From IMG/VR virus record IMGVR_UViG_3300024999_000029, positions 186,001 through 250,000 of that record: a stretch of DNA of 64,000 bases. The stretch is one strand, 5' to 3'. The stretch's first letter is position 1, and each line of letters begins with the position of its first letter. Positions 7,027 to 53,272 of the stretch are shown here, piece after piece. The notes under the pieces are model-generated. The model ran no database searches and was not told the origin of the DNA. It worked only from the letters and a program-made list of their open reading frames with translations. Both the position numbers and the translations under genes were made by a program.

Positions 7027-7037
7027 ATGAATAATTT

Positions 7038-7155
7038 GTAACTAGCAGGGCGGTGTATCCTGCATCTCTTTATCATAGCTCCCTATCTCATTTTATTGAG
7101 CGATTAACGTTTGTTAACGGAAGGGTTGATAGCAACCATTTCTATCCTTAGTTAC
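7038..7155 (-). ncRNA. second tRNA-like cloverleaf RNA (~118 nt)
   Basis: GTAACTA/TAGTTAC closing stem, GATAG/CTATC arm, GCAGG/CCTGC 3' arm, two small central hairpins. Confidence 0.5.
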
Positions 7156-7273
7156 AAATTTAAGTCCCGACATCTAAACACATTAGCCATTTCCACTATT
7201 CTAATGCCAAACTCAGTCAGGTGTTTCGCTTTTCACAGTGGTTTGTGTCAGCTAGTTTAATAAAATTGTCCTT

Positions 7274-28903: not shown

Positions 28904-28930
28904 TGCAGAATTAATAACCTGCACTACTTT
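28897..28930. terminator. bidirectional terminator between convergent repressor genes
   Basis: AAAGTAGTGCAG-loop-CTGCACTACTTT. Confidence 0.75.
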
Positions 28931-31400: not shown

Positions 31401-32189
31401 ACCTCGATCAACTTCAGCCATGAGTGTTCACGACAAATTGCATAAGTTTTCAAAATAATTAATAAAATTCTGTTTAGATAATAAAGAATCTTCAGGATTA
31501 ATTACTTCACAAATTTTATTCCAAGATGTATTACTATTATTGTTATTATGTAGAACACAATCAATTAGATTTTGCTTACCTTGTTGTGGATTATAAGGAT
31601 TTAATCTTTTTGTTATAGACCACCAAGAGAAATAACTTGTTTGCGGATTATTAAATGTGTTCTGAAGTTCGTTAATTTTTGTAGTTAGCTCTTGATTACT
31701 TTTAAAATTTCGCATATTAATTCTCCTTTAATAAATTTATACACTAATTATATGATATTATAAATATTTATGGTTATATTTTTGCAAAATGCACGAAAAA
31801 GACTGTAAAATACAATTAGAATGTTGTTCGCATTAAAAAACGTGCAACATGCAATAGTTGTAATATATTAAATGATGTCTAATATTGTCGATTGTATAAT
31901 TATTATATACTTTTATATTTTATTTTTTAAGTCAATCCGTGTAATCTTGCGTCTGCTATTTGCTTCTCCAACACTTCCACATAACTAACACCTTTATTGA
32001 TCCGTCTGTGTAATGCATTTTCCACGTAAGGTTGAGTTAATAATAGTTCCCCGTTATATTTTATGAAAGCCGTCAATTGATTCAAAATTGCTACCTCTTG
32101 ATGCCATCTGCTATTTACAAATTCTAATTTAGTCATTTATTTGCACCTCATTCTGTATTATATTTTAGTCTATAAACCCATTAAAATTG

Positions 32190-32387
32190 TTATTTGATTG
32201 AATTATTCCACTTTTTTATTGCCTCTTCTTTTGTTTCATAGCTCTCCTTCCATCCACAATTACATATGGAGCAATTAGGATTATACCAAACCTCTCCATC
32301 ATAAAATTCTACATGAGTTAAATAAGCCAATTCTCCGCAAAAAGGGCAATGTTTTAATTCTTCATTATATTCCGATGTTATTCCCAT
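32190..32387 (-). CDS. Lar-family restriction alleviation protein
   Basis: ELKHCPFCG...CSIC...EAIKKWN. Confidence 0.75.
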   Translation of the reverse strand: MGITSEYNEELKHCPFCGELAYLTHVEFYDGEVWYNPNCSICNCGWKESYETKEEAIKKWNNSIK

Positions 32388-33885
32388 ATATAAATCCTTT
32401 CAATAAAATCTATTTTTCATATTGTTTTCTTGCTTCTTTTATTTTTTTAGATATATACTCTAACATAGTTTCCATAACACCGCTATTCCACATATAATAA
32501 TTTATATCACTATGAGTTTTGGCATTTGTAAGCCTTGTTAATATACTATATTGTAGCTCGTTCAATCTAACATGGTCATAATAATCACTTAATATCAATT
32601 GCTTAGCCTTTGTTTGTAGCTTTATTAATTCGTTATTTAATTCTTTTGTTTCTTCCTCTGTGTATTTGGTTGCCACATTATTACCTCCTTTTGGACAAAA
32701 TACTGGTTTTACTTTAATTTTTCTAACATAAGTGTTTCATTTTTTAATCTTTTTACAGTTAATTCATAACTCCCAATTAAAAATTTAAGCGTACTCAATC
32801 TGTCTATAATAGCCTCATTTTTGGTTTTATGATAACCTGGAATATCTTTCTCTGTGTCCATTTCTTTTTCCCGTATTTCACCATCATCAGTTATCTGAAA
32901 ATATAACATTTTTCTCCCCTTTTAAATATTGGATTTAACGTTTAATAATATTTATCTTTAATTTTCTGCATAAGTGGCAAATAACTTTCTTTTATATTCT
33001 TAGTAAATTGTAATAAATCGTTAATAGTCATTTCTGGTTTTAAATAACCAAGTTTTAAATTATGTTTTATAAACTCCTCCAATTGTTCAATGTTTTTTAC
33101 TGGTTTTTCAATACTCATAATCTTCTCCTTTATGAAATGTTACTTTTGTATTAATTAAGTACAATAACTTCTTTTATATAATCCCAATCTATATTTACTT
33201 CATTATCTATTTCAATCTCATATTCATTTATAAAAGTTAATACTCCTGAATAATCTTCTTCGTACTCAGATTTATCAGTTATAACTTTTACTTTTGTCTC
33301 ATTTTCAATTAAAGTCATTTGTTCCCCATCATTATTTCTAATAATGAGAGCGTTTAAAGAATTTATGCTATCAGTTTTCATACTTTACTCTCTCCTTTCG
33401 ACCAAACGTTAGTTTCATCTAAAATCCATTCAAATTCTTTTTTAATGTTGTTTTACTGTATATACGGCATATCTTCATCATAAGATATTTCTTTAGATTT
33501 AATTGTTATAATGTTTCCTTTTTGAAACTTATTTTTGTTAAGAAATGCTTCAGAAATAATTATTTTACAACCTACGCTTAAAACAATTTCACAATGTCCT
33601 GTAGATTTATCTTGTTCAATTTTCATTATCTTTCCCTTAATAACTATACCTTCATCATCATTTAAAACAGTATTGTCTATTATTTCAAAATCATTTTTAA
33701 TAAAACCCATAACAAATCTCCTTTCAATGAAAATCCCATTTTAATTACATTCTAAATCATTACGTTCATTGCCATTTTCGTCTATATACCATAAAGGAAT
33801 TATCTCACACCACCATGCCCACATAGTTATTCTCCTTCCTATTAATTTTACCATACACTTATTTACAATCAAATAGATTTTTGAT

Positions 33886-34539
33886 TTAAATATTTTTATA
33901 ATCTTCTTGTAGCCATTTCATAATTCTGTTATATCTTTTTTTAGAATAGATTTCTTTATTTTTTATGTACCAAAAAACTAATTCATATTTTCTTTTTGAG
34001 CTATTACACGATTTACAAGCAGGTACACAATTACTTAAATCATTTTCTCCGTCATGTACAACATGTTCTTTATGTAAAACGTTTTTATATTTTTGTGTAG
34101 CTTCTATTTCATTAATACCACAATAAGCACAGGAATAATTAAAATATTTTAAACATGCCGACCATTCTTCTTTTGTGATATTGTGATTTTTATTTTGTCT
34201 TATTTCATTATATTCTTTTAATTTATCTGGATTGGTTTGTTGCCATCTCTTCAATAATTCTTTTGGTCTTTCTGGATTATTATTTCTCCATTTTATATCT
34301 TTATTTCTAAAATATTCTGGATCATTTTCAAAAAGTTTATGATTATATTTACTACGTTCTTCTGCATGTTCTTTTTGATATTTCTTTTGTCTTTCAATAT
34401 TACATTTTTTACATTGAGGATGAAAACCATCTTTACTATAATTCCACTTATAAAAATACTCATCTGTTATAGGCAACCATTCAATACATTTAGTGCATTG
34501 TTTATATTCAATATCGTATTCTATTTTATATTGTGCCAT
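33886..34539 (-). CDS. HNH endonuclease (third paralog)
   Basis: CAYCG...HKEHV...CKSCNSSK. Confidence 0.8.
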   Translation of the reverse strand: MAQYKIEYDIEYKQCTKCIEWLPITDEYFYKWNYSKDGFHPQCKKCNIERQKKYQKEHAEERSKYNHKLFENDPEYFRNKDIKWRNNNPERPKELLKRWQQTNPDKLKEYNEIRQNKNHNITKEEWSACLKYFNYSCAYCGINEIEATQKYKNVLHKEHVVHDGENDLSNCVPACKSCNSSKRKYELVFWYIKNKEIYSKKRYNRIMKWLQEDYKNI

Positions 34540-34834
34540 ATTTAAACCTCACTATTATTTTATATTTTATTTCTCTCTTTAAAGTTTTTCCATTCTTACA
34601 GTTCCACATTTAGGACAGGAGTACAAACCGACTTCTGTTATGCAACTGTTATAACCATTATCTCTATCTACAACGAAACTACCTTTAATTCTTTCAAAAT
34701 TTTCACCATTTTTATCACTCTCGGCATCATATTCATCATCCCAATAGTAATTCTTTTTGTATCCACATACACACTTCATAACCCTCAACCCCTTTCTGTT
34801 ATCTGTTATAATTAAATATCGTTTTTCATTAATT

Positions 34835-35128
34835 TTAATCCCATCTCAAATCCTCTATATATTGAAACGGACGCGCTATTAATTTATAAGCATCTTCCAA
34901 AATTTCCAAATTAGACATCGTATCTATATTAATTATATCTAAAGATTTTATCTCTGCTAAACGAAGTAAAAATGGACTAAACGTGAAAATATTAATATCT
35001 TTATTGTAATTATCTTTTAATAACTCTACTTGTTTGGTAGGGTGAAACCTATCCCAGTTTTCCATATTATTATCTGGTGCATAGTATACGTTTAAAGAAG
35101 TGTATATTTTCATAATTAATTCCTCCAT
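34835..35128 (-). CDS. degenerate AAA_15/AAA_21 ATPase C-terminal fragment
   Basis: FHPTKQ (cf. LHPxxQ), FTFSPFLL (cf. TTHSPxxL), YKLIARPFQYIE. Confidence 0.45.
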   Translation of the reverse strand: MEELIMKIYTSLNVYYAPDNNMENWDRFHPTKQVELLKDNYNKDINIFTFSPFLLRLAEIKSLDIINIDTMSNLEILEDAYKLIARPFQYIEDLRWD

Positions 35129-35908
35129 ATTTTATTTATTGGTCATCTTCTGTTATAATATGAAACACATCTTTCATTAGTTTAAATCAAAAACAATTTC
35201 TCTTGCCAAACTAATCCCATCTGCAATACTTGTACTTGTTTCATACTCTTTTATCTTAACTTCTTTTTGTTTTTGAAGTTCAATAAACTTAACGTGTGAA
35301 ACACTTTTATTTTCTAACTGTTTATTTATTTCCAAAATGCTTTTTTCTATTGCCCCACATTCTTTTATTTTATTCCGATACTCTTCAGATATTTTTTCTA
35401 TTACTAAATTATATTTCACGTTAAACTCCTTAGTGTCATATTATAAAACAGTTCATTTATCTAAATAAGTCTGCGTATTCTTTTAGTCCTAGGGCTTCAC
35501 ATAATGCCTTTTCTGCTAATTCAATTTTAGCTTCATCTATTATTGCAGGATTGTTCAACCAGTGTAATGCTTCTATTACTTTATCTTTGTTCACATACAT
35601 TTACCTCCTGTTTTATTATATTTTTGATTAAAAATAACCTTTTATCTTGATTTACATTTAATACATTTAATAGGTAAACCTGTTTTGAATTTTAAATTAA
35701 CGCATTTTGTTTTATCTAATGGACAATAATTCACATGTGAATTAATCAAATCTTTTATATAAAGTATATTTTCGGACTCTTTACAATTCGGACAAATTAG
35801 TTCTCCTTCAAATTCTGTGTCACAAGTTTTACATAATATCTTATCACTCAATTAAATCACCTCCACTATATTTAAAATTCTGCTATAACTTAATATCAAA
35901 TAAACTAT

Positions 35909-36493
35909 TTATCTACTAACAACTACTGGAACAACCTTCAATTCCATAATTCGAGCTACAATATATCTGATATATCCGTCTATTAGTAATCCACTATTAT
36001 TAATTACTACTGGCGCATCAAGTTTATTATTGTTTTTATAATATTCAATACAAGCATCAACTTTTTCTTTTCTTGGCGTTGTTTCTAAGAAACATTTGGG
36101 TATTACTATTTTATCAAATTCTACTGAATCGCTGTTGTTATCAATTTCAATAGCACTTTTAAAACCAACATTTCTGATGAACTCTTTTCTTGATTCTGTT
36201 ATAATAACCACTGGTATTTGCATATGATTTAAAGATTTTGCTATAGAATAACCCCTATATCCGCTAACCAAAGAGTATTTGTCATTTTTCTCTTGTTTAA
36301 CTATTATTGGATTGTTCAGCACTGTTATATTTTTATTTTCAATTCTTTCAACTTCCTTCTTAAAAGTAACTCTGGCATTTTTATGTGTTTGTTCTGTGAG
36401 TATAACATCAACTACATTGATTATTTTTACCTCTTGTGACTTTACAAACTCTTCTCTTTTTAGTTGATTTTCTTTAATTATTTGCTTATTCAT
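35909..36493 (-). CDS. protein with two ParB/Srx-like N-terminal domains
   Basis: NPIIV...YSLVSGYRGY and APVVI...LIDGYIRY. Confidence 0.65.
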   Translation of the reverse strand: MNKQIIKENQLKREEFVKSQEVKIINVVDVILTEQTHKNARVTFKKEVERIENKNITVLNNPIIVKQEKNDKYSLVSGYRGYSIAKSLNHMQIPVVIITESRKEFIRNVGFKSAIEIDNNSDSVEFDKIVIPKCFLETTPRKEKVDACIEYYKNNNKLDAPVVINNSGLLIDGYIRYIVARIMELKVVPVVVSR

Positions 36494-37273
36494 AACCTTA
36501 TCCCCCTTTACTATTATTTTATATTCTTAATTTTATCCCAAACTTTCTGACAAGCTCTATAAAACTTATCATCATCGTTGACAGACCATTCTAGCAACTT
36601 ACTCAATATTTTTTCTTGCTTATGTGATACTTTGGTTTTGTTATACAAATATTTTTCTATCTCATTACTATAATCAATTACCATTTACTTCTCACCTACC
36701 TTTTCAAAAATAATAGTTGTTATAATTTCTGTATCACTTGTAAGTAAATTACTATTCATAAGTGCTGAGTGAGGCTTAGAGATTGCTGTTATAATCATAT
36801 CTCTGTAAATTATATTTGAATTTAATAAAAACTTATTGACATCTTTGTCTTTTGTTGATATATCCTTATTCCTAAATGTTTTTGTTTGGATCATATCAAC
36901 CAATCAACCCTTCTTTTATATTTTAATTATGCTAATCTATACGCATCTGTTATTGATCTGTCATATCCATCCATTTCAGCATTTATTAACGCTTGTTCTT
37001 TGGTTGGAGCAAAATAAATACCTATTACTAATTCTCCTGAAACATCATACCATTCATTGTCATCACAAACCGCATCTGCTTTTTTAACCATTTGTGAATC
37101 TCTTACAAAAGAAGCATTTACCACTATTAAATATTTATTCATTTTCAATTTCCTCCTTTATATATTTTTATATTAATGCCTATTTAAATATTTGTTCCAG
37201 AAGCATAATTCCATCAAGTAATAACTGGCTGCTGTTATAAGTCCATGGATAAACATTTAAATCACTTCCTCGC

Positions 37274-37630
37274 TTATATTAGATATATTAATAAATCCTT
37301 ATCAACCTTTTCTTTTGCCTGTTCAATGTTATTTTTAATAATGTATTGCAGTAAACTTCTAATATGAGCTGTCTTGTTGTTTCTTGTTTTCCCTACTGCT
37401 TCGCTTACATACTGTTCAATGTCTGATATAGATACCGTTGCTATATCTCTATTTATACGCTCCATAAATGCTCCAATATCAACTTTATATTGTACCCATG
37501 ATGTAATTTTATCTCCAAACTTTGATTTAAAAGCCTCATAATATGTTTGATTAACTGTAAGTAGATTATATTGCTTAATATGCTCTGCTTTTACCTTTAA
37601 AACCTTTTCACTCATTGTATACTTACCCAT
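37274..37630 (-). CDS. stand-alone integrase core-binding (SAM-like) domain
   Basis: Y..DI..F...DI..V...DIEQY...KTRNNKTAHIRSLLQY pattern of tyrosine recombinase CB domains. Confidence 0.5.
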   Translation of the reverse strand: MGKYTMSEKVLKVKAEHIKQYNLLTVNQTYYEAFKSKFGDKITSWVQYKVDIGAFMERINRDIATVSISDIEQYVSEAVGKTRNNKTAHIRSLLQYIIKNNIEQAKEKVDKDLLIYLI

Positions 37631-40106
37631 TGTTATGACCTCCTTTATAATTTAATTATACTAGTAATAATCTTTTTACGGTATCTTCGCCAAACTTATA
37701 TGCCTTACCGTCACTACATACTGCCTTAACTGGCATTTTATGTGCTTTAAGGTTTAACCCTTTAATTGTAAATGTTTTCCCGTTCATATTAAACTGCTTA
37801 TTATAATCTGTTGGTTTAAATCCAAACAACATACAGTATTTCTCAAATTCCGCTTGTTCAAAAGACTTTCCTGATACTTCTTTCTTATTTACTTGTAAAT
37901 CAAGATTAAAGCTGTTATCCGAATATTTAACTTTCCCTGCTTTGATATTTGCATTATATTTATCAGCTATTTGCTTCAATGCTTCCTCAACTTCCGATCT
38001 GAAATTTATAAATTCTTGCCTTGTTAACATTTTTTTATTCCTCCTTTATATTTTCGATAAACTAAGTTTTTTATTTAAATATAATATGTTTACTATTCTC
38101 TTTTACAAAATTTTCTGCTCCAGATATTTTTACAAACTTTTTAAAACAATCATCATGTATAAACTTTCTGTGTTTACTGCATTTATAAATGTAGTGCGAA
38201 TCTATATCTGTTAATAAAAATTGACTACATACAGGACAGACCTTACAGGATGCACTTTCATATGTTGTATTTGCATTTTTTATACCTCTAGAAACACAAT
38301 ATATATGTTTATTATTTCTTGTGTTTTTTTGGCTGTTCCTTTGCATTTCATTTATAGTCATTCTTTCTCTGCCACTTATAATCATCTTTTCTTTTCCAAA
38401 GTCCCAATCTGGGAATTTTGTTTTAATTATTATTGCTTTTATCGCCAACATGGTTATTATAGTATCTCTGTTATTATTATCCATTTGCTTCAATGTACTA
38501 TTAATATTTTCAGATACGAATCCATATGCTTCTGGAGTATTAATTGCTAGTATTATGTTATTGCTAAATTCATATATACTTATTTTTTGAGACATATCAT
38601 ATGTTATGGTCACAATTTTTTTTACTCCTTTTATTTTATATTTTTCATTAAATCTAATATTTTCTTCAAACTGTTATACTACCTTTATAAATTGAACGTA
38701 TCTTTCTGGCTTCCTGCATCTTGGTTTAACTACATTAAATACAACCTCTAGTGCATCTATTTCTCCTTGCAATTCTCTTCTAATTACATCTTCAACCTCT
38801 GTATTCATATCAATTGTTTCTCGTTTCCATAAATCAAAAATTTGGCTTGTCATACAGTTTGAAATTTGACACTTATCAACACTTTTTAATGATGCATCTT
38901 TAAATGTTTTACTATCAACTAATTCCTTACACTTGTTATCAATCCATTCTTGAAGCTTCATAATTACATCTCCTTTATTTTATATTTTACTTTAAAATGG
39001 GTAATTTATCAACCTTTTAAACCTTGCTGTTATACTAACCATTGATATTATCTAAGTCAACTCCATAAATATCTTTAGTCCAGTTTTTCAATATGTAATG
39101 ATAATTGATTAATCCTTCCCATTCTAGGCACTCTTCAAATACTTCATCTGGTGACATTTTGTTGAGCTGATCATCATGACTTTTATCACTCTCTATTAAT
39201 CCCTGTCTTTGTCTTAATTTCTTCAAAATATATTCTGGATATTGTTTCACGCTGTCCACCGCTCCTCTCTCCATTATACTAATTGTAAAGATAAAATTAT
39301 ACTTGCAAAACCCTGTATTGTCTTTACTCTCTGGATATCTGCAATTTCTTTATGTATTTTATTATTATGTTTATAAGATATTGCCCACTTATCCATATAA
39401 AATCACCTCCTGTTATACAATTTAATATTTATTAACCACACACCATAAAAATCTTTTTTGAGATTCTTTTAACTTTATATATTCTGAGCTGGGTTTATCT
39501 TGCTTAATTGCTTTTATTGCATTTATACATTCGGCAATTGTAATTGTTTTACTATTTTTAACTACTGGACTAAATTGCATATTGACACCTCCCTGTTATA
39601 TTAGATTGTGTTCTTTTAGCTTGTTATAAATCATTTTATATTCTTGATTTGTTAAATTTAATATTTCCTTAATTCTTTTTGCCTCTGCTTCTCTTATGTC
39701 TTGCTCCATCATTTTTTGAATTCGTGGTGTTATATTATTTATTTGTATTGCTTTTATAATTTCTTCATTTCTAGTCACTTTTAATCCCTCCTATTATAGC
39801 CTAACTTACACCTTGAAATGTTTTATGAGATTTTCTTTTGAATCTTAAAGTTCTTTTTCAAACATTAACATTGTACTTGCTCTAATAATTTCCGAATTAT
39901 TTTCACCTATTAATTCAATAAGTTCATTTAATAGTAAATCACAATCAGTAAAGCATTCTTTTTCAAGTTTATAATAAAATTCATCAAATTTATTATTTAT
40001 ATTTTGCGCCTTTTCAATATCTAAACCATATTGTAACATTAATAAATACATACTATAAGCCATTGAATTTAATTCTTTCTCGTTCATTATTATACACCTC
40101 CTGTTA

Positions 40107-40239
40107 TACCTCCTAATACCTTTATGTACCTCCTAATACCTTTATGTACCTCCTAATACCTTTATGTACCTCCTAATACCTTTATGTACCTAATTATACC
40201 TTTATGTACCTCCTAATACCTTTATGTACCTAATTATAC
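40107..40239. repeat. 20-bp tandem repeat TACCTCCTAATACCTTTATG, ~6.6 copies
   Basis: Directly visible; two copies carry the variant TACCTAATTATAC. Confidence 0.95.
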
Positions 40240-40673
40240 TTTGAAATGCTTCTTTTATCGGATTATTTTCAAGCATCCATTTTGAATTTTTACTATATTA
40301 CTTTTCCCAAACTTTATTGTATGTCCAATGCCTATTGAACTAATAATTATTCCTTTTACATATGAAAAGCTTTCTACTCTATCACCTTTTTTAATGGGTT
40401 TATATTCTGTTCTTGCTATATTCATTCTCTATACCTTCTTCCATATGAAAACTTTTCTTATTCTGTTTTTCAGTCAAGTGTTCAACTTCAATAATATCTT
40501 CCACATCAATATCTATGTCGTTCCATTGACCTTCTTCAATTATCTTTAATGCTTCCTTTTTAGAGTTTGCAATAACAGTTCCTTTTGCTGAACCAGCTAC
40601 TCTCATTATAAAATTAAAAGTTTTCATTCTCAACCCTCCTGTTATAAGTTAAAATACTTTTTTCATGTAATTT

Positions 40674-40937
40674 TTAATTTAATGTAGTTGTTTTTGCCAA
40701 TGGTTCTTCGCTGTTTTTCATATCTTTTATTTTTATAGTTGGTATATATTCAATTAAATCTCCAGCCGAACAAAGTAAAGCTTTACAAATTAGATCAATA
40801 TGTTTTAATGTTATTCTTTCAATTGTTTCATTATAAATTTCACTAATTGTATTCGGTCTAATTTTAGTTAATCTAACTAAATCCGCTTGATTCATTCTTT
40901 TTTCATATAATAAATCAGCTAAATGTAACTTAACCAT
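40674..40937 (-). CDS. XRE-family HTH regulator
   Basis: LADLL.EKRMNQADL...TISEIY...ICKAL.C..GDLIEY. Confidence 0.85.
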   Translation of the reverse strand: MVKLHLADLLYEKRMNQADLVRLTKIRPNTISEIYNETIERITLKHIDLICKALLCSAGDLIEYIPTIKIKDMKNSEEPLAKTTTLN

Positions 40938-43644
40938 TTTTAATCACTCCATCAAATTCTAATTCTATTGTTTAACCTCTGTTATTATTCCAATAACCGT
41001 TTCCCCATTTTTTAAATGTGCATAAGCTATGCCGTCACTATCCTGCGTTATCCTTACAACGTCTTCAAATATTCTATTGCCTGTAAAAATTACAGTCATG
41101 TTTTTACACCTCTGTTATATAATTTACTCAAATCTTTGCTTAATATTATTCATAATACAGCCTAATTCACTAACTGTTATATCTTCCTTCTCCTGCTCCA
41201 TATTCCTGCTAATATCTATAAAATTTAATACCTTTTCAAACTCTACCGCCTCAAGTTCTTTAACTGCTATTTTCGCCAGTTCTGTATTTGATATTATCAT
41301 AACTTTCGCCTCCTGTTATATTGAAATACGGATTTTATTTGTTTATCTTTCAAATAATATCTCGAAAATTGGTATGCCTTCATTTCTCATTCCGCTTAAT
41401 GTACCTCTTAACTTTTCTAATTGTTTTTTAACCGCTTGACGTTTTTTATCTTCTCCGATAACTCTATCATCTAAATATATTACTGAGAAATTGCCTTTTA
41501 AAATATCATCCTCCATGAATTTATAAATCATTTCATCTATTCCAGCATTTACAATTGCATTTCTAATTGTAGTTAATACATTTATTTCTGTTCCGTAAAA
41601 TGTACAATCAAGCAAGCATTTAAAAGCCGTTTCATTTTCATTATACATTTTCTCTAATCTTATTGTTTTTTCATACATGATTAATTCCTCCTTAAATTTT
41701 GTTCAAATGCTGAATTTATTTTATTTTAAATTGTTTTCAATTCTTTTTGCCCATTCTATATAATAACCTTGTTTGCTTACTGGAATATCTTTAAACATAC
41801 TCCAAAACATTTCTGTCAAATAAGTATCTCCTATTCTTTCGGCAATTTCTTCAATTTCTTTTAAATTCTTTTCTTTATTAGTCATTGAATAAAACCTTCT
41901 TTCTATTTGTTTTAGTTGAACTATTTTTCTATTTCTGTTATACTTAAATTGTTATATAGCTTTCTAAGCGTTCGAATCGGGATGTGCGGTAAACGTAAAA
42001 GCTATATAGTTTTAACCAATACACAATGTGTATTTAAATTGTAGTAAAATTTGATTTTTAACCAATACACATTGTGTAGGGAATAGGACTGATATAAAAG
42101 CCAGCCCTATTTTTGTTCCTGTTATATTACTTTGATTAAATCATATTTTCCTAAAAAGTTTTTAACAATTAACGCTTCACAAGGTTCAAACTCATAATAA
42201 CGGTCATCCTCTTCATCCGCTGGAATAGCTCCTTTCGTTAACCAAATTATATCACTATCAAGCACTATCTTACGCAACTCTTTTAATTCGTTAATGGCTT
42301 CTTGAGATGGACTATATTTAATATCCCATTTTGCCCTATCATCATAGTCAAGGATAAAGCCATCAAATTCCTTTTCTGCTCTTTCTAATACATAATTTTT
42401 GTGCGCATATTGCCCTAACTCCAAACAATCTTTTAAATATTGACTTCCATTTTCTAATATCCATTTTTTCTTTTCTTCTTCTCTTGCCAACTTTTCTTCT
42501 TGCTCTTTTCTTTTCTTTTCTGTAATTTCTTGTTCCTTTGCTTTTCTTTCCTGTTCCTTCTTATCTATTCCTTCTTGTTCTTTATCTGCATATTTAGCCA
42601 AAAATGACTTTGATAATTCTGAATTATTGGGAAATATAATTTGATCAAAGCTATGGCTTCCATAATTATTAATTTTTAATTCAAAACTAGTCCAACTATA
42701 CCAAGCACCATATGTTGATATAAAAGGTTTAATGTTGATATCTATTATTTCATATTCTAATTCTTCAGCCTTTTTCAACCATTCTTGATTATTATCTTTT
42801 TGTAATTGTTTGGCAATTTCTTCTTTTCCATTTTCAACAAACCAAGCAGCTTGAGCATATCCTCTCTGTTCTTCTTCTGTTATTTTATCACAAAATTTTA
42901 AAACCTCTACATAAATATGATTTACCAGTTCATTTTGATTTTTCATAATACTTCTCCTTCTGTCTGCTCATTACAGACATTTCAAAATTCATTAATTTTG
43001 TTATAGTTTCTCATTTCTAGCTACTATAAAACCGTTATGTTATGCTCTTTTATGGCTCATACACAAGCCATATATTTTATAGCAGAATTGCTATTTTTTC
43101 AATAAATCCACTCATCGAATTAGTTTTAGCTGTATCAATTTTAGCTTTTCCGCTGGCGGTTATTTGGTAAGCTGTTATATCAGTATTACAAACCTCAACC
43201 AAAATACTACCGATTGGTAATTTATGTTCAAAATTTATATTTAAGAAATCTCCAATAAAAGCATAACCATTTGTTTTCGTAATATCTACACTTTTAATGA
43301 CCTTTACCCAGTGTTTGTATTTTGTTTTATGATGATTTGCTGAATTTTTGCAGTCGTGAGTATAAACTATTAATTTTTCTTCAGGTGGCTTTCTGGATTT
43401 TAATTCAGAATTGATTAATTCATTCAAATTTTTTAATTCTTCAATTGACATATTTTTTAGAGTTTCATTATTAAACATTTTATTTTCCTCCTTGGCTCAT
43501 TAGCCTTGAATTTTGTAACAGCTCATTAACTGTTATATGTAATTATATGTTAGTGTTTATCAACTGTCAATATTAGTATAATACTATCATATACGATTGT
43601 CAAGAATTCTATGCTATTATTTTATATTTTATTTCATTAATTTA

Positions 43645-43908
43645 CTATTGCTCTATTAATTGTGTTATATCAATATTTAATAAGTTCGCAAGTTTTAAAG
43701 CTATTTCAAAGGCTATAGTATGACGTTTTTTGGGCTGTCTATATGCGTATATTGTTTCTATCTTTAAATTCAATTTATCGGCTATATATTGGGTTTCACA
43801 GCTTGACTCATTGATATATTTTACAATATTTTTCTTAATAATTACAGGATCAACACTGTTATAATAATTAATGAGTGCTTCCAATTCTCTTTGTTCTTGT
43901 GTAATCAT
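43645..43908 (-). CDS. HTH protein
   Basis: IADKLNLKIETIY...FEIALKLANLLNIDI. Confidence 0.65.
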   Translation of the reverse strand: MITQEQRELEALINYYNSVDPVIIKKNIVKYINESSCETQYIADKLNLKIETIYAYRQPKKRHTIAFEIALKLANLLNIDITQLIEQ

Positions 43909-45091
43909 GGTTTCGCCTCCTGTTATTGTAGAAAATCATGGTTTTATCTTAAAATATTATCACATACTCTATAGCCCATTAATGCAATTTCCCTTGATGA
44001 TACAATTTTTGAATTTGAATCTTTAAAGCACTCAGTTTCAAAACTAGCTTTTTTTAGTTTTATATAGCTCTCCTCTTGTTTCGTTTCCCAATTATAAAAA
44101 ACTATTGTTTGCCCTTCTTTTACGGCTTTTAATATTTGTATGACTTCTAAATCTAACATTGTAGAGCCTCCTCAATTATATTTTACTTTTTGTTATACGT
44201 TAAAATTGGATTTTTATTCATTTATTAATTTTTCTATTGCCCAATCTGTAAAACTATCTCTTTCAATAATAAATAATTGATCATCGATTTTTATTTCAGT
44301 ACCATTTTTTAATGGACAGTCTGGCTCGCCTGTGAAAGTATTCCAATGATTTACATAAATTCCTTTTGAATATCTGTCTTTTATATGTCTACTATAAAAC
44401 CTTTTTGTGTTTTTATCTTGATAAATTACTCTACATTGTCCCGTTTGTTCTTCAATTTTAATTAAGTCTAACATTTTTTATTCCTCCATGTAATATATTT
44501 TGGTTCGTGTTATATAATATTTTGGCTTATTAATATAATGTATTCCATTTTTCGGTCAAATAGTATTCTGGTATTTTATATTTACTTTTTAACTTGTTGT
44601 ATGTAGTAACTGTTATATCAATACACTCATCTATTGTTGGTATGCCTATTTTAAAGCCTTTTGGATATTTTTTTAATCTCTTTTCAATCTCTCTTTTACT
44701 CTTAATATAAACCAATCCTCTAAAATTTTCATCCTCATCTAATTTAACATAGATTTTATTACCAAAAGCATCTTTAATTTTTTCGTCAATTAATTCCATT
44801 TTTAAAACCTCCATGTATTATATTTTAGTTTGTGTTATATGATATTGTGAGTTTATCTAATTATCTAAATATAATGATATTCTTTGTTTTAGATAATATT
44901 GATTTAAGTCTAATATTGCAGATAGTTTCATTATGCCTTTATTATTAAATGTAAAATTATAGCCATTAAGTCTAATATATTCATTCCAAAGTTGTTTACC
45001 TTCATACCATAAATTTCTTTGTTCAGTAGTCATTTTTAAAACTCCTTTCAGATATATTTTGACTTCTGTTATATAAAATAACCATTTTATA

Positions 45092-47803
45092 TTATACTGC
45101 AATTTCATTTGTTTCTTCTTCCTTATTCAATATTATAATTCTTGTTTTAACATTTGTCATTTCAAAAGTTCCACATTCCAGACTTATTGTATCATAGGTT
45201 TTTTCTTCTAGCCATTCTCTAAAATTTTGACTTTCTTTATCATTCGCAAAAGTCCAATGTTCTGAAGTAATTGAGATTAATTTTCCGCCAGTTTTAAGCA
45301 ATTTGTAAGCGTGTTGTAAATGTTTTATATCTTGATTATTGGTGAATGGTGGATTCATTATTATAGCATCATAATAATTATATTTTTGATATTCTAGTAA
45401 GTCATTACCTATTACATTATGATTTTTTAATCTCAATAATTCTGCAAAGCTGCTATTCCACTCTATAATGTCAACATATTCTGTTATAGCTTTTATTTGA
45501 TCTGCAATATTGCCTATTCCTGCTGACGGTTCTAGCACCCTACTGTTATTGTCTATGTTTGCAAATTCAATCATTTGTGAGGCTGTTTCTTTTGGCGTGA
45601 AATTTATATCTCCTTTTTGTCTTAGTTTATATTCATTTTCTAACTTTTTAATTTTTTGTTGTATCGGATTTTTGTATCTGTCTATGCTATTATAAATTAT
45701 ATTATATTCCTCAACGGCTTTCGTTAATTTTTGAATATTTGTTATTCCGTATTTTTTTAATTTGTTTTGTTTCGTTGGTACTTCTTTGTTATACCATCCA
45801 TCCAAGGGTAAGGAATAATCTACTTGCGGAAATTTTAAACCTTGCGTATTCCTTCCATACTTCATTATATAATACTGGTGAATATTTTCCCTAAATGCGC
45901 CAACTATCAAAGCTTTTTCAAGTTCTGTTATTACTGTATTATCAATTAATTTTTGTTGCACATATTCCAATAATTTTATATTAATTTCTAATGATTCTTT
46001 TTTACTATCTCGGCTTTCTTGCTCTCTCATTCTTTTATATGTGTTTGTTTGATAATCTCCTGATAATGCTGCTATCTTGCTCTGCAATGATTCTATATTT
46101 TTATTTATCTTTTCAAGCAAATTATTCTTTTCGGCTTGTTGTCGCTCATGCTGTTCTTTTTGTTCCGCTTCTGCTTTAATTGCTTGTAATACGTTCTTTA
46201 ATCCTTCAAATTCGATATAGTTTAATAACTGTTCTGTTATATTAATATTATGCTTTTGCACGTATTCAGCAATATTATTTTTATATTCTTCATTTGTGAA
46301 ATAGTTTTCACTATTTAAGCCCAATTTGCAAATATTTTCCGTTGATTCATCAATAATATTATCTGCTGTTTCTTGCTCTTTGTTTGTTGTTACTTCTTCA
46401 GATTGTGGAATATTAACACCTTTTAAAGCTTCTGACGGTTCATATCTAAATATAAAACCATGTTTAAATTTAGAATAATAACCTTTTATTTTTTTCATTT
46501 GTTCCGATACTTTTATATATTCATCACTTGTTAGTTTATTAACTATTTTTACTACCCATAAAGCGGAATTGTCGCGCGTGTCTGTATCGGCTGTTATAGT
46601 GTATTCATTATTAATAATATTTGAATTTTCGGTTTGTTTCGTCTGTTCTGTTATAACTTCTTTTGATTTTTTAGATGTTTTTTTTACCTTTTCAATCTTT
46701 ACCCATTTTTCAACCTCTGTTATTTCCTCAACTTCTTTTAGTTCAAATATTTTTATATTTCCTTTTTTTAAGTCTTTTAACATTCTATCTTCATAATCAT
46801 AATATCTTTTAGGGTTTGTTAATTGCATAAATTTTCTTTTTTCGCTTCCTACTATTTCGTAACTAAAAGAATTTTTTTCTTTCCTTATTCCTTGCCATGT
46901 TCCGCTTCTGATTTGTTCGCCTGTTATCTTCCAATATCCGCCATGAGTTGTAAATGTTAAATAGTCGCCAATTTTAAAAGAATTCCTTTCAACTTGAACC
47001 ATTTTTAAAACTTTTTTTACTTCTGTTATTGTCTTTTTTTCATATCCTGCCTTTACTTGTTGGTCTTCTGCTTCTTTTATATTTTCTTTTGTTCCGTCAT
47101 ACATACCACTAAAACCATTTACAATGCTTTCTATTTTAAGAATAAATGTTTTAAAATCATTTACGGTTTTTAACTCTTTTTCTGTTAGTTCTTTCTTTTG
47201 TGGCTGCTCTCCGTTCCATCCTCGCCAGTGTGTATAACCTTCTTTATATTCCATTTTTATAATGTCGAATTCATATTCTTTCGGTAAGTCCGAATATTTT
47301 GTTATTCCTGTTCCTTTATCGTATATTCTACTATCTTTTTCTATGTGCCATTTAGACGTTGAAGGGTTCGCCATAAATAAAGGATATTTATATTTTAATG
47401 TTTTTGTATTTTCTTTTGTTTGTTGTTTCTGTTCTGCTGATTCTTTTATTTTTTTTATTAGTTTTTTAGCGTTTGTTTCTTCTCCTTCTGTTGCTCCGTT
47501 CGCTTGCGTCATTGCTTCAAGTTTTTTGATTTTTTCATAGTCTATATTTGAATTTATAGTGCTGTTATACGAATATACTTCTTTTCCTGAATAGTTTTTT
47601 ACTTGCCATTCCTCAACGTCAACACACAGTAAAAAACCATTTTTTTCTGCTATTCCATCCCAAGAAGCAGGGTCGTAATAATCACTCATAGAGTCGCTTT
47701 TATCTTCTTTATATCCGTATAGCTTCCAGCCTCTATTTCGTAGTTCGTGTGCTATTCTTACTTTTGCATCCCTCATATCATAATAATTACTCATGTTTTG
47801 CAT
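45092..47803 (-). CDS. large protein with C-terminal N6-adenine DNA methyltransferase domain
   Basis: FTP, VLEPSAGIG (SAM binding) and MNPPF catalytic motif in the last ~180 aa; long uncharacterised N-terminus. Confidence 0.8.
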   Translation of the reverse strand: MQNMSNYYDMRDAKVRIAHELRNRGWKLYGYKEDKSDSMSDYYDPASWDGIAEKNGFLLCVDVEEWQVKNYSGKEVYSYNSTINSNIDYEKIKKLEAMTQANGATEGEETNAKKLIKKIKESAEQKQQTKENTKTLKYKYPLFMANPSTSKWHIEKDSRIYDKGTGITKYSDLPKEYEFDIIKMEYKEGYTHWRGWNGEQPQKKELTEKELKTVNDFKTFILKIESIVNGFSGMYDGTKENIKEAEDQQVKAGYEKKTITEVKKVLKMVQVERNSFKIGDYLTFTTHGGYWKITGEQIRSGTWQGIRKEKNSFSYEIVGSEKRKFMQLTNPKRYYDYEDRMLKDLKKGNIKIFELKEVEEITEVEKWVKIEKVKKTSKKSKEVITEQTKQTENSNIINNEYTITADTDTRDNSALWVVKIVNKLTSDEYIKVSEQMKKIKGYYSKFKHGFIFRYEPSEALKGVNIPQSEEVTTNKEQETADNIIDESTENICKLGLNSENYFTNEEYKNNIAEYVQKHNINITEQLLNYIEFEGLKNVLQAIKAEAEQKEQHERQQAEKNNLLEKINKNIESLQSKIAALSGDYQTNTYKRMREQESRDSKKESLEINIKLLEYVQQKLIDNTVITELEKALIVGAFRENIHQYYIMKYGRNTQGLKFPQVDYSLPLDGWYNKEVPTKQNKLKKYGITNIQKLTKAVEEYNIIYNSIDRYKNPIQQKIKKLENEYKLRQKGDINFTPKETASQMIEFANIDNNSRVLEPSAGIGNIADQIKAITEYVDIIEWNSSFAELLRLKNHNVIGNDLLEYQKYNYYDAIIMNPPFTNNQDIKHLQHAYKLLKTGGKLISITSEHWTFANDKESQNFREWLEEKTYDTISLECGTFEMTNVKTRIIILNKEEETNEIAV

Positions 47804-50800
47804 CTCCTTTGATTATATTTTGTTTAATTGGTATGGAGTTTTTGCAGATACTCCAATAAGCTGTTATAAGCTGTTAAACGGCATTATCAAATATTTCTTT
47901 AAAATCTTTTTTATAATGATTCCAATGTATTAAACTATATAATTCAGAAAATTTCATATTTAATATATTTTCGCTCGGTTTATTTAAAATATTTTCTATT
48001 ACTTCAACTTTCCAAGGCTTAAAATATTCACCAAGTTTTATATTACATTTTACAATAACTTGCATGGTTGTATGATTTGTTATATCAATATTATTTAAAA
48101 TATGCCTATCTTCTGGATGTTCTTTTTCTGCTATATGATAAGATTCAATATAATTTTCAATAATAAATGTAAACTGTGAATTTATTATCCCATTGCAATA
48201 TATATTTATTTCTGTTTCAATATCTTTTAAAAATTCAATTGCATTATTTGTTGACGTATAATTTTTATATAATAAGGTTTTTGAATGTGTTTCATAAAAT
48301 ATTTTACCATTCCACTTTTTTGCAATTTCCCATAATCCGACAATCTTCAAATATCCATGTTTATAATCATATTCTACATGATAATTTTTTGGTAATCCCT
48401 GCAATATCATTAATCCTGCTGAACCTTGTCTTTTAAAATGTGTTTTAATCATTTTTTCATTACCTCCATTTAATTTATATTTTTGTTATACTACTAAATG
48501 AATTTATTCCATATTTCTTTCAAGTTCAAAAGCAGCTATATCAACTGTTATATCAATTTTATATTGTAGAATTTAACAATAAACAAATATGTTAAATTTT
48601 CAATTTTTCCATAAATGCCATCAAATTGACCGCATCGCTAAGATGTTCATTTTCATATTTAAAAAATAACTTGTAGTTTTTCAATTCATTTATTTTATTT
48701 GTTTCAATTTGACATAATTCAGGGTTTTCTGTATAGACCATTACGCTGCCATCTTTTTTTACTTCAATACTGCATAACCCCTTTTTTTCTAAAAAATAGC
48801 ATATTTCTTTACGTACTAGTATTATTTCAATTCTATCAATCATGTTTAAGCCCTCCTAAAATTCATTTAAAAGTTATATTTGATTAAAAAGTTCTTCATC
48901 TTGTAAATCTGCAATTAATATATATATTTCAACTTCAGTCATTTTTTTACTAATTTTCACCATATTGCTTTTTTTAAACATATCAGTTCTAAAATAAAAT
49001 TTAATTTCTTTACTGTCATAGTTTTCTAAATATGGAGTATTACAATTATTCCAATTAATTTCATCATATAATTTTTTATCATCGACAAATTGAACCCCCT
49101 TGACTATATAGTCACAAATATTTTTGCCAAATTTAAATATATTCTTACGTTCGTAAGGATTTTTCCCTCTTATATCTTGATGAATTGCGCGTGATAAATA
49201 TCTTAATTGTTTTTCATTTAACTTAATCATCTTTTAAAATCTCCTTTTATTTTTAGCTGCTGTTATACAATTATATTTTAATTCTCACAGCTGCCAAAAG
49301 TTTTTATTTATTAAGTATAAGCATATTAAATTAATTATGATTGATTCTATGAAAATGTATGCTATAATGTTTTTAAGCGAATTTTTTAATTTAGTAGGGT
49401 TAAATTTTAGCTTGTGGGCTTTACATCTCGACAATGTAAAGCTTTTTTCTATTAGTGCGTAGGTAGTCATATTATTTTTATATCTCCTCTCTTTTTGTTA
49501 TCTGGTAGCGAATTTTTAAAGAATCCGCCAAAACTTTTATTTTACATTATATGTATATTTGTAGATATTTCCTAACAATTCAATTTCTACAGTTCCAACT
49601 TTCTTTGATTCGCTAACATTATGAATTTTTATATTTTTGATGATTGAATCTAATGTGTATGTTTTAATTCCTGCAAAAACGTTACTGGACATTGTTAAGA
49701 TTAAAACCGTTGTTATTATTACTTTTTTCATATTCTTATATCCTTTCTTTTTTATTGAGTTTTTACCCTTTATCACTTGCATAATTTTATGTTTTAATTA
49801 TGCAGCATTAGCTTACACAAGTAAAAATTATAAAATATGTGCATTGCCTTTGTTATCTATACCATTCAATTCTCTAACTCCAAATCCTGTTTTAATTTCC
49901 ATCTTTTTAAAATCAATGTTGCTAATCGTTGCTGTTACATACGTTTGATAATTTAACTGACATACTTCAGTTTGTAAAACCGTTACTGTGTCCCCTTCTT
50001 TCAAACTCTTAAATTCTTTTTTAGTCATTATTTCAAAAACCTCCTTTTTATTTATTTTACTGCTACCTTGACGGCTGTTATACCGTCAAACGCTTTGAGC
50101 TTAAAGTCTATTTATACACGCTCAAACGTGTTAATACAAAAATATAATTTTATTGGCTTTTAGGTGGTGCAATATAACCCATTTTTTGACCTTCAGAACA
50201 TATTTCACATAATTTACTAATTAGATTATATTTCCAGTTTTTTCTGGTAATCAATTTTTTTAAGATTTTATGTGCTTGTATATAATGATATTTGTTATAT
50301 GGCATTCTCAAAACCTCCATAAAATTATTTATTCATTGCAACTTCTAATTCACTAATTTTATTATTAAACCATTCAATTTCCTTTTTTAAGTCTGTTATA
50401 TCTTCTTCAGATAATTTTATATTGCTAATGTATAAATATTCTTCATTAGTTTCGAAATTTTCCCTAAAACGGCATTCACAGCCAGACTCCAATTCTTTTT
50501 TTGCAATAACAAGTGCTTTATTTTTTAACCTATTATATTCTTCTAAAAACAAATCTTTAAATTCGGCTGAATATTTATATTTTGATGTCTTGCCAACGCA
50601 CGCATAATATCTTTTGTCTTTACTGTAATACTCATAACCGCCACATCTTGCACTACTATGAGTAAAATTGCAGTTACTTATAAAAGCACTCTCTTGAGCA
50701 TCAGATAAATCTATTCTTGCAATTTCTCGACCTTTTAAAGTTGTTATAATTACATTATCAAACCAAGTTTTTTTCATGTTTTAACCTCCTTTATTCTCCT

Positions 50801-51474
50801 TTAAATTTAATATTTTTCCATTAAAATGTCAATTTTACTTTATCTTTAACACTTCCCAAATTCCATCAATTCCACTAAATTCATAACAATTTTTTAGTTT
50901 TAAATCCCAAGTAGCTTTTAGTTCTTTTACTTCTTTTGTATCAACATTTTTTAATATAAAAACTTTCATTTTAAAAACCTCCTTTTTATTTAATTACTTA
51001 TCTAATAACATAAGCTGTTATAACAAACTAACATTTTACATTAATTTTATTTCAAATTTAAAAATCACAGTCAAGCAACTTAAAAATTATATATGTATTG
51101 TTTAATATCTTATGTTATTAGTAATTAATCAAAGTTTTTTGGAATTTATTATAATTTCTGCTACGTTTTATAATTGCTACACTATGTGTTATTTACTCTT
51201 ATACGCTCCCGCTAACATTGTGTTGTTAATATGCGTACTATGTATAAGATACAATTATAAACCTTTTAAGGATGGTTATTTCCTGCAATTTTAGGGATAT
51301 GTAATCCTAAAATTTAACTGCTATTTGTTGCAGTCTGCAAATTCAATATTCAATTTTATAATTGATAGATAACGTCAATATTAGCTAAGTCAAGCCAATT
51401 TTATTGGTATGGTTGAACGTCCACAAGTATAGATATAGCTACCGCAAGGTGACTATCAACTTAACTTATAATTA

Positions 51475-51503
51475 ATTATAACATAAGTAAATTGATATTG
51501 CAA
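51475..51503 (-). promoter_or_regulatory. leftward early promoter TTGCAA-17-TATAAT with extended -10 TG
   Basis: Sequence match at the head of the leftward arm; TAAAATATAAAA motif immediately upstream. Confidence 0.6.
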
Positions 51504-52106
51504 TACTAATTTTATATTTTACTTTTATAATATTAATATGCAATTACTTATTATATTATACATATTAATTTTACATGTTACGATGGTATTGTGAGGTCGT
51601 GAGAGGCTCATGGTTGAATGTTTATATGGTTTATAGTCAAGTATGTATAAATAGGGTAAAAGCAGCTTAATGGTATTGTATTTTTTAATGTGAGCTATTT
51701 AATATTTATATAGGACTATAGTCCTATCTTTTAAGACTATTTTGTGCTTAGTATCTAGTCATAAAAGTGGTGAGTGTATACTCTATTTAGTATGTTTTTA
51801 TAGTCAAAGTGGTGATTGTTTGAAAACAGTTAATCAATGAGTCAAAATAGGCTATATAATAGACTTTATAGGTTTGTTTATACTATTACCTTTTTATTGT
51901 GTCTATGCAATTTTAGTGCTATTTTAAAGGTAGTTATTTTTATGAATTGTTTATTATTTACATACAATTTAATATAGTAATTTGATATTATGTAAGCATT
52001 AATATATTTAATGTTTTAATTATTATTTATTGATATTGTTAATGTTAGTATTAATTATATTAAGGTGTCAAGTAGTTTGACTTTACAGTTGTTGTATTTA
52101 GATTGT

Positions 52107-52195
52107 ATAGGTCTATAGCACTAATGATATATAGGTATAAAGTCCTAGTGTAATGTAGGTCTATAGTCCTAGTAGTGTATAGGACTGTGGTATTA
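52107..52195. repeat. 24-bp-period array of ATAGGNCTATAGTCCTA-like palindromes (perfect copy at 51710-51727)
   Basis: Copies start at 52107, 52131, 52155 and 52179. Confidence 0.8.
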
Positions 52196-53272
52196 TGTAT
52201 TCACCAAGTCGCACCTTGTTATAACGAAAAAAATGAGTGATCACTCATTATCCAATTAATACCATATTTATTTTTAGCTTTTTATCCTTCTTCTCCAAAC
52301 AGAAATAAAAATAACAATTACCATTTATTCCCATATACAAAATTCAGACTAAATTGAGTATGATAATAAATCAATTATCTATCTGATTTATTCAAATTCA
52401 CATTCAATTTTCGCAAAGTTCCAGATAAGAATATTTATGTAGAACTACTAGAACACTGCTAACCGTAAGCGTAGGGGATAGTTTACAAATTTTAATCAAT
52501 TATTTTTCAAGAAATGCCCCGTAGCACTTCTATTCACACACTAACTCAATTTTCCAATATTTCACTCTAAAATTAACTTTAAAATTACAAAAAATAATCA
52601 TAAATAATTTTACTAATTAATTCCATTCATATTTAAATCTATCAATAAATATTATCAAATATATTATTAAAACTATTAAAAATCACAAAATTTCGTTCGT
52701 AACCTCTGTCGATAAAACTCACTTATATCAACAAAAACTCTGATTTTATAATTCTAAAAATTAACCAATATCTTTACATAATCAACATCAAACCTTACTC
52801 CTACACTACTTAAACGATATAACCACATTCTGGACTAAATATTCTATTATTGGCATCCCTAATTAATCAGAAAATCATCTTCAATTACTACTCTATCTAA
52901 GCTTATATAAGTATTTTAATAATTTTTGACGAAGTAGCTAAATTTTAACAATGATAAAAATGATAAATTTGAACTTTTTTACGTTTTGATTTGTGTAGCG
53001 TAGCGGAACAAAACAAATAAGCAAAACATTCTGATTAGTAATAAATAATTAGTAATTATATAAACACATAAATTTTAAAATTTTGAAAAAGAATACTCAC
53101 ACTATAATCTATTTCTAAGTTATAATATGAGCTTGGATTTGGTGGGAGGAGAGGTTGTATTATTTTGTGGATTATTAGATTAGCTAAAGTCCCAAATCGG
53201 TAATTTATTATTATATGTTTTTCCACCGTTTTGTGACTAAGTTTTATATTTTAGTTTTCTTATCAACTGTTT

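Follow-up and report, generated by a model that had tools for sequence, protein, structure and literature searches.

A one-stranded octamer array confined to 17 kb of an uncultured phage, and its possible role as a tag on early transcripts

Here we describe a strictly polar array of a short word in a 64,000-nucleotide (nt) stretch of viral DNA, referred to below as the window, which spans positions 186,001 to 250,000 of the 349-kb contig IMG/VR UViG_3300024999_000029 (JGI Ga0209728_1000004). On the plus strand of the window, the octamer CTGTTATA occurs in 37 exact copies and never inverted, and 36 of the 37 fall between 33926 and 51022, a segment that we call the zone. GC and AT skews and the map of open reading frames (ORFs) place every gene from 1 to about 57 kb on the minus strand; with all zone genes on that strand, the functional word is accordingly the sense-strand form, TATAACAG. 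The zone is 85% coding and holds about 47 ORFs, mostly small and without a known family. The array, its boundaries and the lone copy outside it are laid out as follows:

33926-51022, minus strand: array of 36 exact TATAACAG copies, mean spacing 488 bp
20753-20760, minus strand: lone copy outside the zone, inside an intein-containing NAD-ligase gene
33845-33872, minus strand: promoter-like site read from the sequence (TTGATT, 16 nt, TGgTAAAAT), left boundary of the array
51023-53272, no strand assigned: non-coding hub, right boundary of the array, with leftward promoter-like sites (e.g. 51503-51475)
Within 51023-53272: 24-bp iterons and palindromes of TAGGTCTATAGTCCTA

An earlier, sequence-only reading of the window had listed 35 copies in the zone; exact counting adds a missed one at 36322 and confirms both the single copy elsewhere, at 20753, and the lack of inverted ones. 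Dinucleotide shuffles of the window yield 3.9 +/- 1.8 copies with both strands summed (maximum 8), and for the zone, Markov models built from sense-strand sequence of this phage outside it put the expectation at 0.6-0.8 copies. The copy at 20753 is at chance level, as 1.6-2.3 are expected outside the zone within the window. Beside the exact copies, the array contains about 28 forms with one mismatch (NATAACAG, TATAACAR/C). On the sense strand, the core ATAACAG is found 49 times in the zone versus twice outside, the relaxed form NATAACAG likewise 49 times and twice, and TATAACA 51 times versus six; a single antisense ATAACAG in the zone brings the orientation ratio to 49:1. A position matrix of the 36 copies has eight invariant positions between uninformative flanks (columns <=0.28 bits), which rules out a longer repeat, a mobile element or a promoter cassette. 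The copies are also spaced more evenly than random, with a coefficient of variation of 0.63 for the gaps (p=0.002 against uniform placement, 0.0002 when an intergenic preference is allowed).

The array ends sharply on both sides. Its rightmost copy, at 51015, sits at the edge of the hub, and the 2.25 kb of non-coding hub DNA adjoining it contains no exact copy, against 7.7 copies per kb in the intergenic DNA inside the zone. The leftmost copy precedes the stop codon of an HNH endonuclease gene by 40 nt, and the new promoter-like site comes after it; the eight small genes downstream of that site (31428-33710) have no exact copy and two TATAACAA variants. In all, 116 kb of the contig was examined for the word. 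ATAACAG is absent from either strand of 35 kb of the same phage beyond the window, and in the 81 kb outside the zone its sense strand carries 2 copies versus 6.6 expected under a maximal-order model, i.e. it is about 3-fold rarer. A low-order estimate gave a strong, both-strand, genome-wide avoidance of the core, which proved to be mostly an effect of the stop codon TAA and left a weak sense deficit. The array is real, under selection and new as a word; literature searches for the word itself returned primer matches only.

Twenty of the 36 exact copies are intergenic, crowded into short gaps, or lie across a gene end (p = 3e-8), and the other 16 are inside ORFs, where they occupy only the two frames that lack an in-frame TAA, which agrees with the Ile-Thr-Glu/Ala readings noted earlier. 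The fusion to ribosome-binding sites reported from the sequence also holds: in six exact copies, TATAACAG runs into GGAGG/AGGTG, 12-14 nt before a start codon. Overall, the distance from copy to start codon varies from 12 to 93 nt, without a fixed register. Individual placements, together with the large gene that recurs in the sections below, are:

39410-39417, minus strand: copy whose final AG opens the next gene's Shine-Dalgarno sequence
39593, 40101, 40639, 41112 and 41313, minus strand: further Shine-Dalgarno-fused copies
43920, minus strand: Shine-Dalgarno-fused variant AATAACAG
38671-38678, 39593-39600 and 42119-42126, minus strand: copies whose internal TAA is the upstream gene's stop codon
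43542-43570, minus strand: perfect sigma-A-type promoter match TTGACA-17-TATAAT; copy 43530 begins 4 nt past the -10 hexamer
49270-49297, minus strand: sigma-A-type promoter match, 11/12; copy 49260 begins 2 nt past the -10 hexamer
50061-50131, minus strand: pistol self-cleaving ribozyme in the early operon (68.7 bits)
45092-47803, minus strand: polyvalent-protein-like gene of 903 amino acids with a C-terminal NPPF class I methyltransferase domain

The copy at 50075-50082 forms the terminal loop of the pistol ribozyme's variable hairpin. The word is thereby economically fitted into existing messenger RNA (mRNA) features, be it a stop codon, the start of a Shine-Dalgarno sequence or a ribozyme loop. 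Presentation in a loop is ruled out as a general rule, being true of the pistol loop and of four hairpins in two related loci (L036 and L048); the unpaired probability of the copies is 0.59 versus 0.57 in composition-matched controls, i.e. there is no structure preference. A separate repeat lies just upstream of copy 40101, where the leader of the gene at 39845-40087 contains a 20-bp tandem repeat (40107-40231; 6.2 copies, 94% matches), each unit of which carries AGGAGG and the MazF hexamer TACATA on the gene strand.

Selection acts on the letters, not on the amino acids. The tripeptide Ile-Thr-Gnn is 3.5 times commoner in the zone than outside, and of its 22 occurrences there, 20 use the spelling ATAACA-G, where codon usage within the zone predicts 6.8; outside, 1 of 14 does. 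In homologues of the 903-amino-acid gene from motif-positive phages, RTAACAG spells 41 of the 63 [Ile/Val]-Thr-Gnn, where 14.5 are expected; in the same gene of other phages it spells 55 of 236, where 46.7 are expected. Several RTAACAG sites share alignment columns in proteins that are 47-58% identical. The spelling in the zone and in the relatives' large gene rules out codon or dipeptide usage, which the sequence-only reading had raised as a possible full cause, and the density is equal neither elsewhere nor on the two strands. Synonymous-codon choice, the intergenic copies and the copy in the ribozyme loop together imply action at the level of nucleotides. What had been proposed, however, was a signal acting at the level of DNA; its polar, zone-confined and nucleotide-level character stands, but the step to DNA does not follow, because with genes on one strand a signal read from the transcript would look alike. 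Moreover, the empty, unconstrained hub set against the densely occupied intergenic DNA of the zone argues against a pure DNA-density signal.

With the 903-amino-acid protein as the anchor, we retrieved about 95 related loci. The same core in the same sense orientation recurs in the early regions of several distant relatives, with the following RTAACAG counts:

L002: 30 sense, 1 antisense
L003: 25 sense, 3 antisense
L020: 31 sense, 0 antisense
L021: 17 sense, 2 antisense
L034: 15 sense, 0 antisense
L036: 16 sense, 2 antisense
L047-50: 15-17 sense, 0 antisense
L059: 25 sense, 0 antisense

Weaker arrays of 9-11 sense copies are present in prophage regions of Bacillus glycinifermentans and Paenibacillus chitinolyticus. 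Copies in relatives often come as tandem pairs, 12-30 nt apart, at times in large hairpin loops. On the anchor-protein tree, all motif-positive loci belong to one of two major clades, where they are distributed patchily, and sister pairs are split (L021 with and L080 without the array; L059 with and L015 without). SPbeta itself has no excess of ATAACAG (17 forward, 17 reverse), a C. tetani phage-plasmid relative (L139) has a PemK/MazF gene and no array, and a search anchored on MrpR returned no motif-positive relative. Megablast against cultured phages gave no match, and tblastn against them matched the methyltransferase domain alone. Reverse genes inside the zones are too few to serve as a test.

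The early zones of motif-positive relatives also contain ribozymes in the sense orientation, namely two Twister-P5, two pistol and one hammerhead (L036 8131-8192, 11627-11691 and 15643-15716; L059 9896-9964; L020 5012-5066), several of which immediately precede a motif copy with a Shine-Dalgarno sequence after it. Four hairpins with 13-17 enclosing base pairs hold two ATAACAG per loop (L036 12318-12340 and 16242-16265; L048 17937-17958 and 18441-18467); those at L036 12318 and L048 17937 are homologous, their stem being kept despite a differing length, and such hairpins may be structured RNAs that present the motif. In the conserved leader of the 903-amino-acid gene (47820-47870; L020 9900-9960), a hairpin GGAG(U/C)AUCUG...CAAAAACUCC comes after a motif copy, an arrangement common to two phages whose 903-amino-acid-type proteins are 51% identical. 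Other oriented words occur elsewhere. L004, which lacks the ATAACAG array, carries six Spo0A-box heptamers TGTCGAA, all sense (0.4 expected), and strongly oriented 7-mers occupy the same genomic niche in L045, L052-L067, L070, L076 and L081 (Lachnospiraceae-type phages) and in L085-L097; among these, AAGCGAA occurs 9-23 times in sense versus 0-1 in antisense and TGCCGGA 9-16 versus 1-3, while CACAACT lies within a repeated cassette of promoter and 5' leader. The oriented 7-mers of those loci may partly be coding bias.

We tentatively interpret the word as marking one class of early transcripts at the RNA level, for recognition by a sequence-specific endoribonuclease or RNA-binding factor. An RNA tag is favoured by the sense polarity, limits that coincide with transcription units, the empty hub, the context-free word, its fitting into mRNA features and a precedent in the same phage family. 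A sharp word of 7-8 nt, without flanks and without structure preference, is also as expected of a single-stranded RNA site, and RNA processing is recurrent in these operons, with a pistol ribozyme in this zone and ribozymes of the twister, pistol and hammerhead types in those of relatives. In the mechanism that we infer, the octamer would be a cis-element of the hub-proximal leftward early operons, and its reader would recognise the sense strand as single-stranded RNA, at UAUAACAG. We envision this reader most likely as an mRNA-interferase-type endoribonuclease (MazF/PemK-like, with an ACA core) and, failing that, as an RNA-binding protein. With sites about every 300-750 nt, in leaders, Shine-Dalgarno sequences and ORFs, the whole early class could be cut or bound together, and the outcome might be a timed early shut-off or an input into the lysis-lysogeny decision.

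The family precedent is that of MazF. Transcripts of SPbeta and phi3T are rich in sites of the host MazF, which drives lysogeny and against which the phage makes inhibitors (bioRxiv 10.1101/2023.04.27.537455; PMC10769878); the MazF site is the exact hexamer U^ACAUA, and this is conserved in Bacillota (bioRxiv 10.64898/2026.08.06.743204). In SPbeta early genes, we count 90 sense UACAUA versus 25 expected (antisense 33 versus 23). The oriented ATACATA of three relatives (L075, L033, L077) is this same hexamer, and there UACAUA is enriched between genes (50-62% versus 17-24%) and next to Shine-Dalgarno sequences (17-30% versus 5-6%). TATAACAG in the window is placed likewise, at 53% versus 17% intergenic and 19% versus 7% Shine-Dalgarno-adjacent. 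UACAUA itself is not enriched in the window's zone (13 versus 12). In the 81 kb outside it (window plus L130, L133, L132 and L136), TACATA is found 71 times in sense versus 44-49 expected and 46 times in antisense versus 48-52, a mild sense excess that is the published SPbeta pattern, here in an uncultured relative.

Several observations weigh against a tag on RNA. An exact specificity of 8 nt is unusually long for a toxin ribonuclease (RNase), and a scan of about 45 zone ORFs and of their neighbours turned up no MazF/PemK, antitoxin-like or RNA-binding gene. The excess of MazF sites in SPbeta is genome-wide and without intergenic bias, whereas the present array is confined to its zone. The even spacing and the relatives' tandem pairs fit a DNA-binding array equally, sense polarity accommodates RNA and DNA alike because the genes are all co-oriented, and a small protein with a predicted DNA-binding fold co-occurs with the motif:

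37274-37630, minus strand: protein of 118 amino acids (family fam54), candidate DNA reader whose predicted fold resembles a tyrosine-recombinase core-binding domain

These last points define the main rival, an array acting on DNA, which we consider unlikely. In it, a phage protein, with fam54 as the leading candidate, would bind as a monomer to roughly 60 co-oriented sites and thereby coat, silence or mark the early region, the polarity arising from head-to-tail contacts or interplay with RNA polymerase. The fam54 gene lies inside the zone, and its family is the one best associated with the motif across clades, being present in motif-positive L001, L002, L020, L021 and L059; it also occurs in one motif-negative lineage (L033 and L103), whose putative recognition helix differs. 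The predicted fam54 model (predicted local distance difference test score, pLDDT, of 77) has its best matches in the phi3T repressor SroF and the core-binding domain of lambda Int, below significance, and its fold and Pfam matches are sub-threshold (E 3-6 and E 0.035, respectively). Within the SroF monomer, which binds an asymmetric site, the core-binding domain recognises about 6 bp (bioRxiv 10.1101/2025.11.27.690993), and a lone domain of this kind could read 6-8 bp. The SroF/MrpR monomer recognises 24 of 26 bp (bioRxiv 10.1101/2025.11.27.690993), so that an 8-bp word is no full repressor box, and the motif is too short and too flankless for a SroF/MrpR box of 15-26 bp; an SPBRE/MrpR operator is likewise ruled out by size and copy number, and SPbeta lacks the array. 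Further against a DNA reader, no fam54 gene lies within +/-10 kb in the motif-positive clade of L034, L036 and L047-50, the non-coding hub is without sites, and a binder of double-stranded DNA gives no simple reason for the 49:1 orientation in ORFs. Two other readers were dismissed, the helix-turn-helix protein at 40674-40937 and the ParB-like one at 35909-36493, which the sequence-only reading had offered as a coating protein; in relatives, neither family is associated with the motif.

The same reading had named a methyltransferase target among its candidates, and we regard this as improbable. The word, ending in ...ACAG, would be the site of the zone-encoded NPPF N6-adenine domain and serve as an epigenetic mark or timer on one strand. 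Recognition sites that end in A-G and carry methylation on a single strand are a hallmark of Eco57I, Type III and BREX-type enzymes, and the present word has such an ending. The 903-amino-acid protein shows hints of LPD domains, MTS and Eco57I-like matches and the NPPF motif, and its C-terminal domain has homologues with the annotation phage N6-adenine DNA methylase. Its gene is itself a motif hotspot, with 10 RTAACAG sites, and the densest one in several relatives. Close homologues, however, occur in array-less phages (L080 compared with L021, L015 with L059), the link between gene and array is partly due to how the loci were collected, the sequence does not assign the domain to a DNA or an RNA substrate, and there is no known rationale for enriching a methylase's own target in one zone. 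A Chi- or KOPS-like polar signal, which would restrain or direct a translocating nuclease or motor on first-entering DNA, was favoured earlier and carries comparably little probability here. It would account for the single orientation, the high and even density and the independence from coding, and the flanks match SPbeta synteny (YonG, terminase, portal and YonD on the right). The corresponding divergent region of SPbeta contains pac (bioRxiv 10.1101/2021.11.22.469490), and a position of the zone close to a virion end is therefore conceivable. Yet the hub, which is coding-free and nearer to the putative pac, has no copies; the array starts and stops at promoter-like sites and is nearly absent from the 81 kb elsewhere, and tandem pairs would be of no use to a Chi site. 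The Chi sequence of Bacillus is AGCGG, and the weaker arrays recur in different genera, B. glycinifermentans and P. chitinolyticus. Least probable is a promoter, in which the word would be an 8-bp box of the -10 type for a phage sigma-like protein (57662-58711) or another phage polymerase. TATAAC agrees with the -10 consensus at 5 of 6 positions, the copies are enriched between genes, and copy 51015 is placed like a -10 box with an upstream TG. T4 late promoters offer a parallel, as they have a sharp 8-mer, TATAAATA, and no -35 partner, which is also the case for the present word. However, a transcript begun 6-8 nt downstream of the six copies that abut a Shine-Dalgarno sequence would lose it, the 12-93 nt to start codons keep no register, the 16 copies inside ORFs include some at conserved positions, and two copies lie just downstream of strong sigma-A promoters. 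An AR9-type promoter (AACA-N6-TW) was rejected, there being no T/W signal at the required offset.

Beyond the choice between RNA and DNA, it is possible, though on the doubtful side, that a dedicated phage- or host-encoded reader of 7-8-nt specificity defines an 'early regulon' purely by this dense polar word. The reader might be a new long-specificity endoribonuclease to which the early transcripts make themselves sensitive, as a lysis-lysogeny or timing switch, or a stand-alone recombinase core-binding domain on a polar DNA array. If true, either version would add a new principle to the regulation of large temperate phages and offer a natural source of a highly specific module for recognising RNA or DNA. 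In any event, one short word appears to address a whole class of early genes, and it invades stop codons, ribosome-binding sites and a ribozyme loop under a selection that overrides codon choice. Were the reader an RNase, the MazF-arbitrium logic of SPbeta and phi3T would extend to uncultured relatives with a different and more specific site, and whether the nuclease prefers lytic transcripts would become testable; were it to bind DNA, this would be a new use of the recombinase core-binding domain. The word also provides a handle for reporters and pull-downs, and for spotting the early regions of such phages in metagenomes.

The surroundings place the array in a phage that, by its gene content, is SPbeta-like. 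YopQ-like and MrpR/YopR-like genes lie at 28.9-31.2 kb (the MrpR-family gene at 28930-29883), replication genes are to the left, and right of the window follows a late module with YonG, terminase, portal, YonD, YonB and YomU/V/W. Variants of the contig with 99.87% identity are present in groundwater metagenomes. The pac site of SPbeta is situated between yonR and yonP (bioRxiv 10.1101/2021.11.22.469490), and by synteny the hub could hold pac here. The hub iterons (52106-52183, 24-bp period) and a perfect palindrome (51711-51726) are both of the form TAGGACTATAGTCCTA and might function as an origin or an operator; the palindromic core, ACTATAG, also ranks first among the k-mers of a Clostridium rectalis prophage (L006). 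Additional features of the region are:

7037-7156, minus strand: Rfam 'skipping-rope' RNA (52.5 bits), with RNA-repair-type genes nearby, RlaP-like at 14753-15754 and a CCA-adding enzyme at 12607-13926
19761-22892, minus strand: NAD-dependent DNA ligase split by an intein with a LAGLIDADG endonuclease
32190-32387, minus strand: Lar-like restriction-alleviation protein, just beyond the array's left edge
L132 16339-18358, about 68.2-70.2 kb in window numbering: IS66-family element (TnpB and DDE transposase) in the late structural module, between portal-like and YonD-like genes

Among known systems, Chi (RecBCD/AddAB) and KOPS/SRS (FtsK/SpoIIIE) resemble the array in being polar words of octamer scale that act by density and ignore coding. 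They are, however, genome-wide, host-defined and unbounded by transcription units, whereas the present word is zone-confined and absent from the adjoining non-coding DNA. In place of a Chi-type distribution, independent of transcription units and reaching into non-coding DNA near an end, we find an empty hub, promoter-like bounds and one TATAACAG in the 81 kb outside the zone, and in place of the genome-wide skew of KOPS/SRS, 2 ATAACAG in the 116 kb examined outside 33.9-51.0 kb. The T4 endoribonuclease RegB acts on GGAG in early mRNAs. Both systems would tag early transcripts class-wide, often at an intergenic Shine-Dalgarno sequence, for timed inactivation, but RegB reads a 4-mer that is the Shine-Dalgarno sequence itself, whereas here an 8-mer stands beside it and inside ORFs; no RegB-like gene was found here. 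Long-specificity mRNA interferases are exemplified by MazF-hw, which recognises UUACUCA, and the S. aureus sraP mRNA is rich in UACAU; these are a precedent for 5-7-nt toxin RNase sites that are over-abundant in particular mRNAs, while an exact word of 8 nt would, to our knowledge, exceed known toxin RNase specificities. The SPBRE/SroF boxes of MrpR and YopR are, like the array, asymmetric and co-oriented with early genes, and SPBRE is read by a monomer, but SPBRE is a 15-26-bp box present about 10 times per genome at promoters, compared with 8 conserved base pairs in at least 36 copies here, many of them in ORFs (PMC10516654; bioRxiv 10.1101/2025.11.27.690993). The MazF sites of SPbeta and phi3T differ in that the word here is another one, of 7-8 nt, that its enrichment is 15-50-fold, not 2-4-fold, and that it is restricted to a 17-kb early zone where theirs is genome-wide. 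They nonetheless share with it the phage family, a short exact word whose excess is on the sense strand alone and an ACA core, and in some relatives the MazF hexamer has the very intergenic and Shine-Dalgarno placement that TATAACAG has here.

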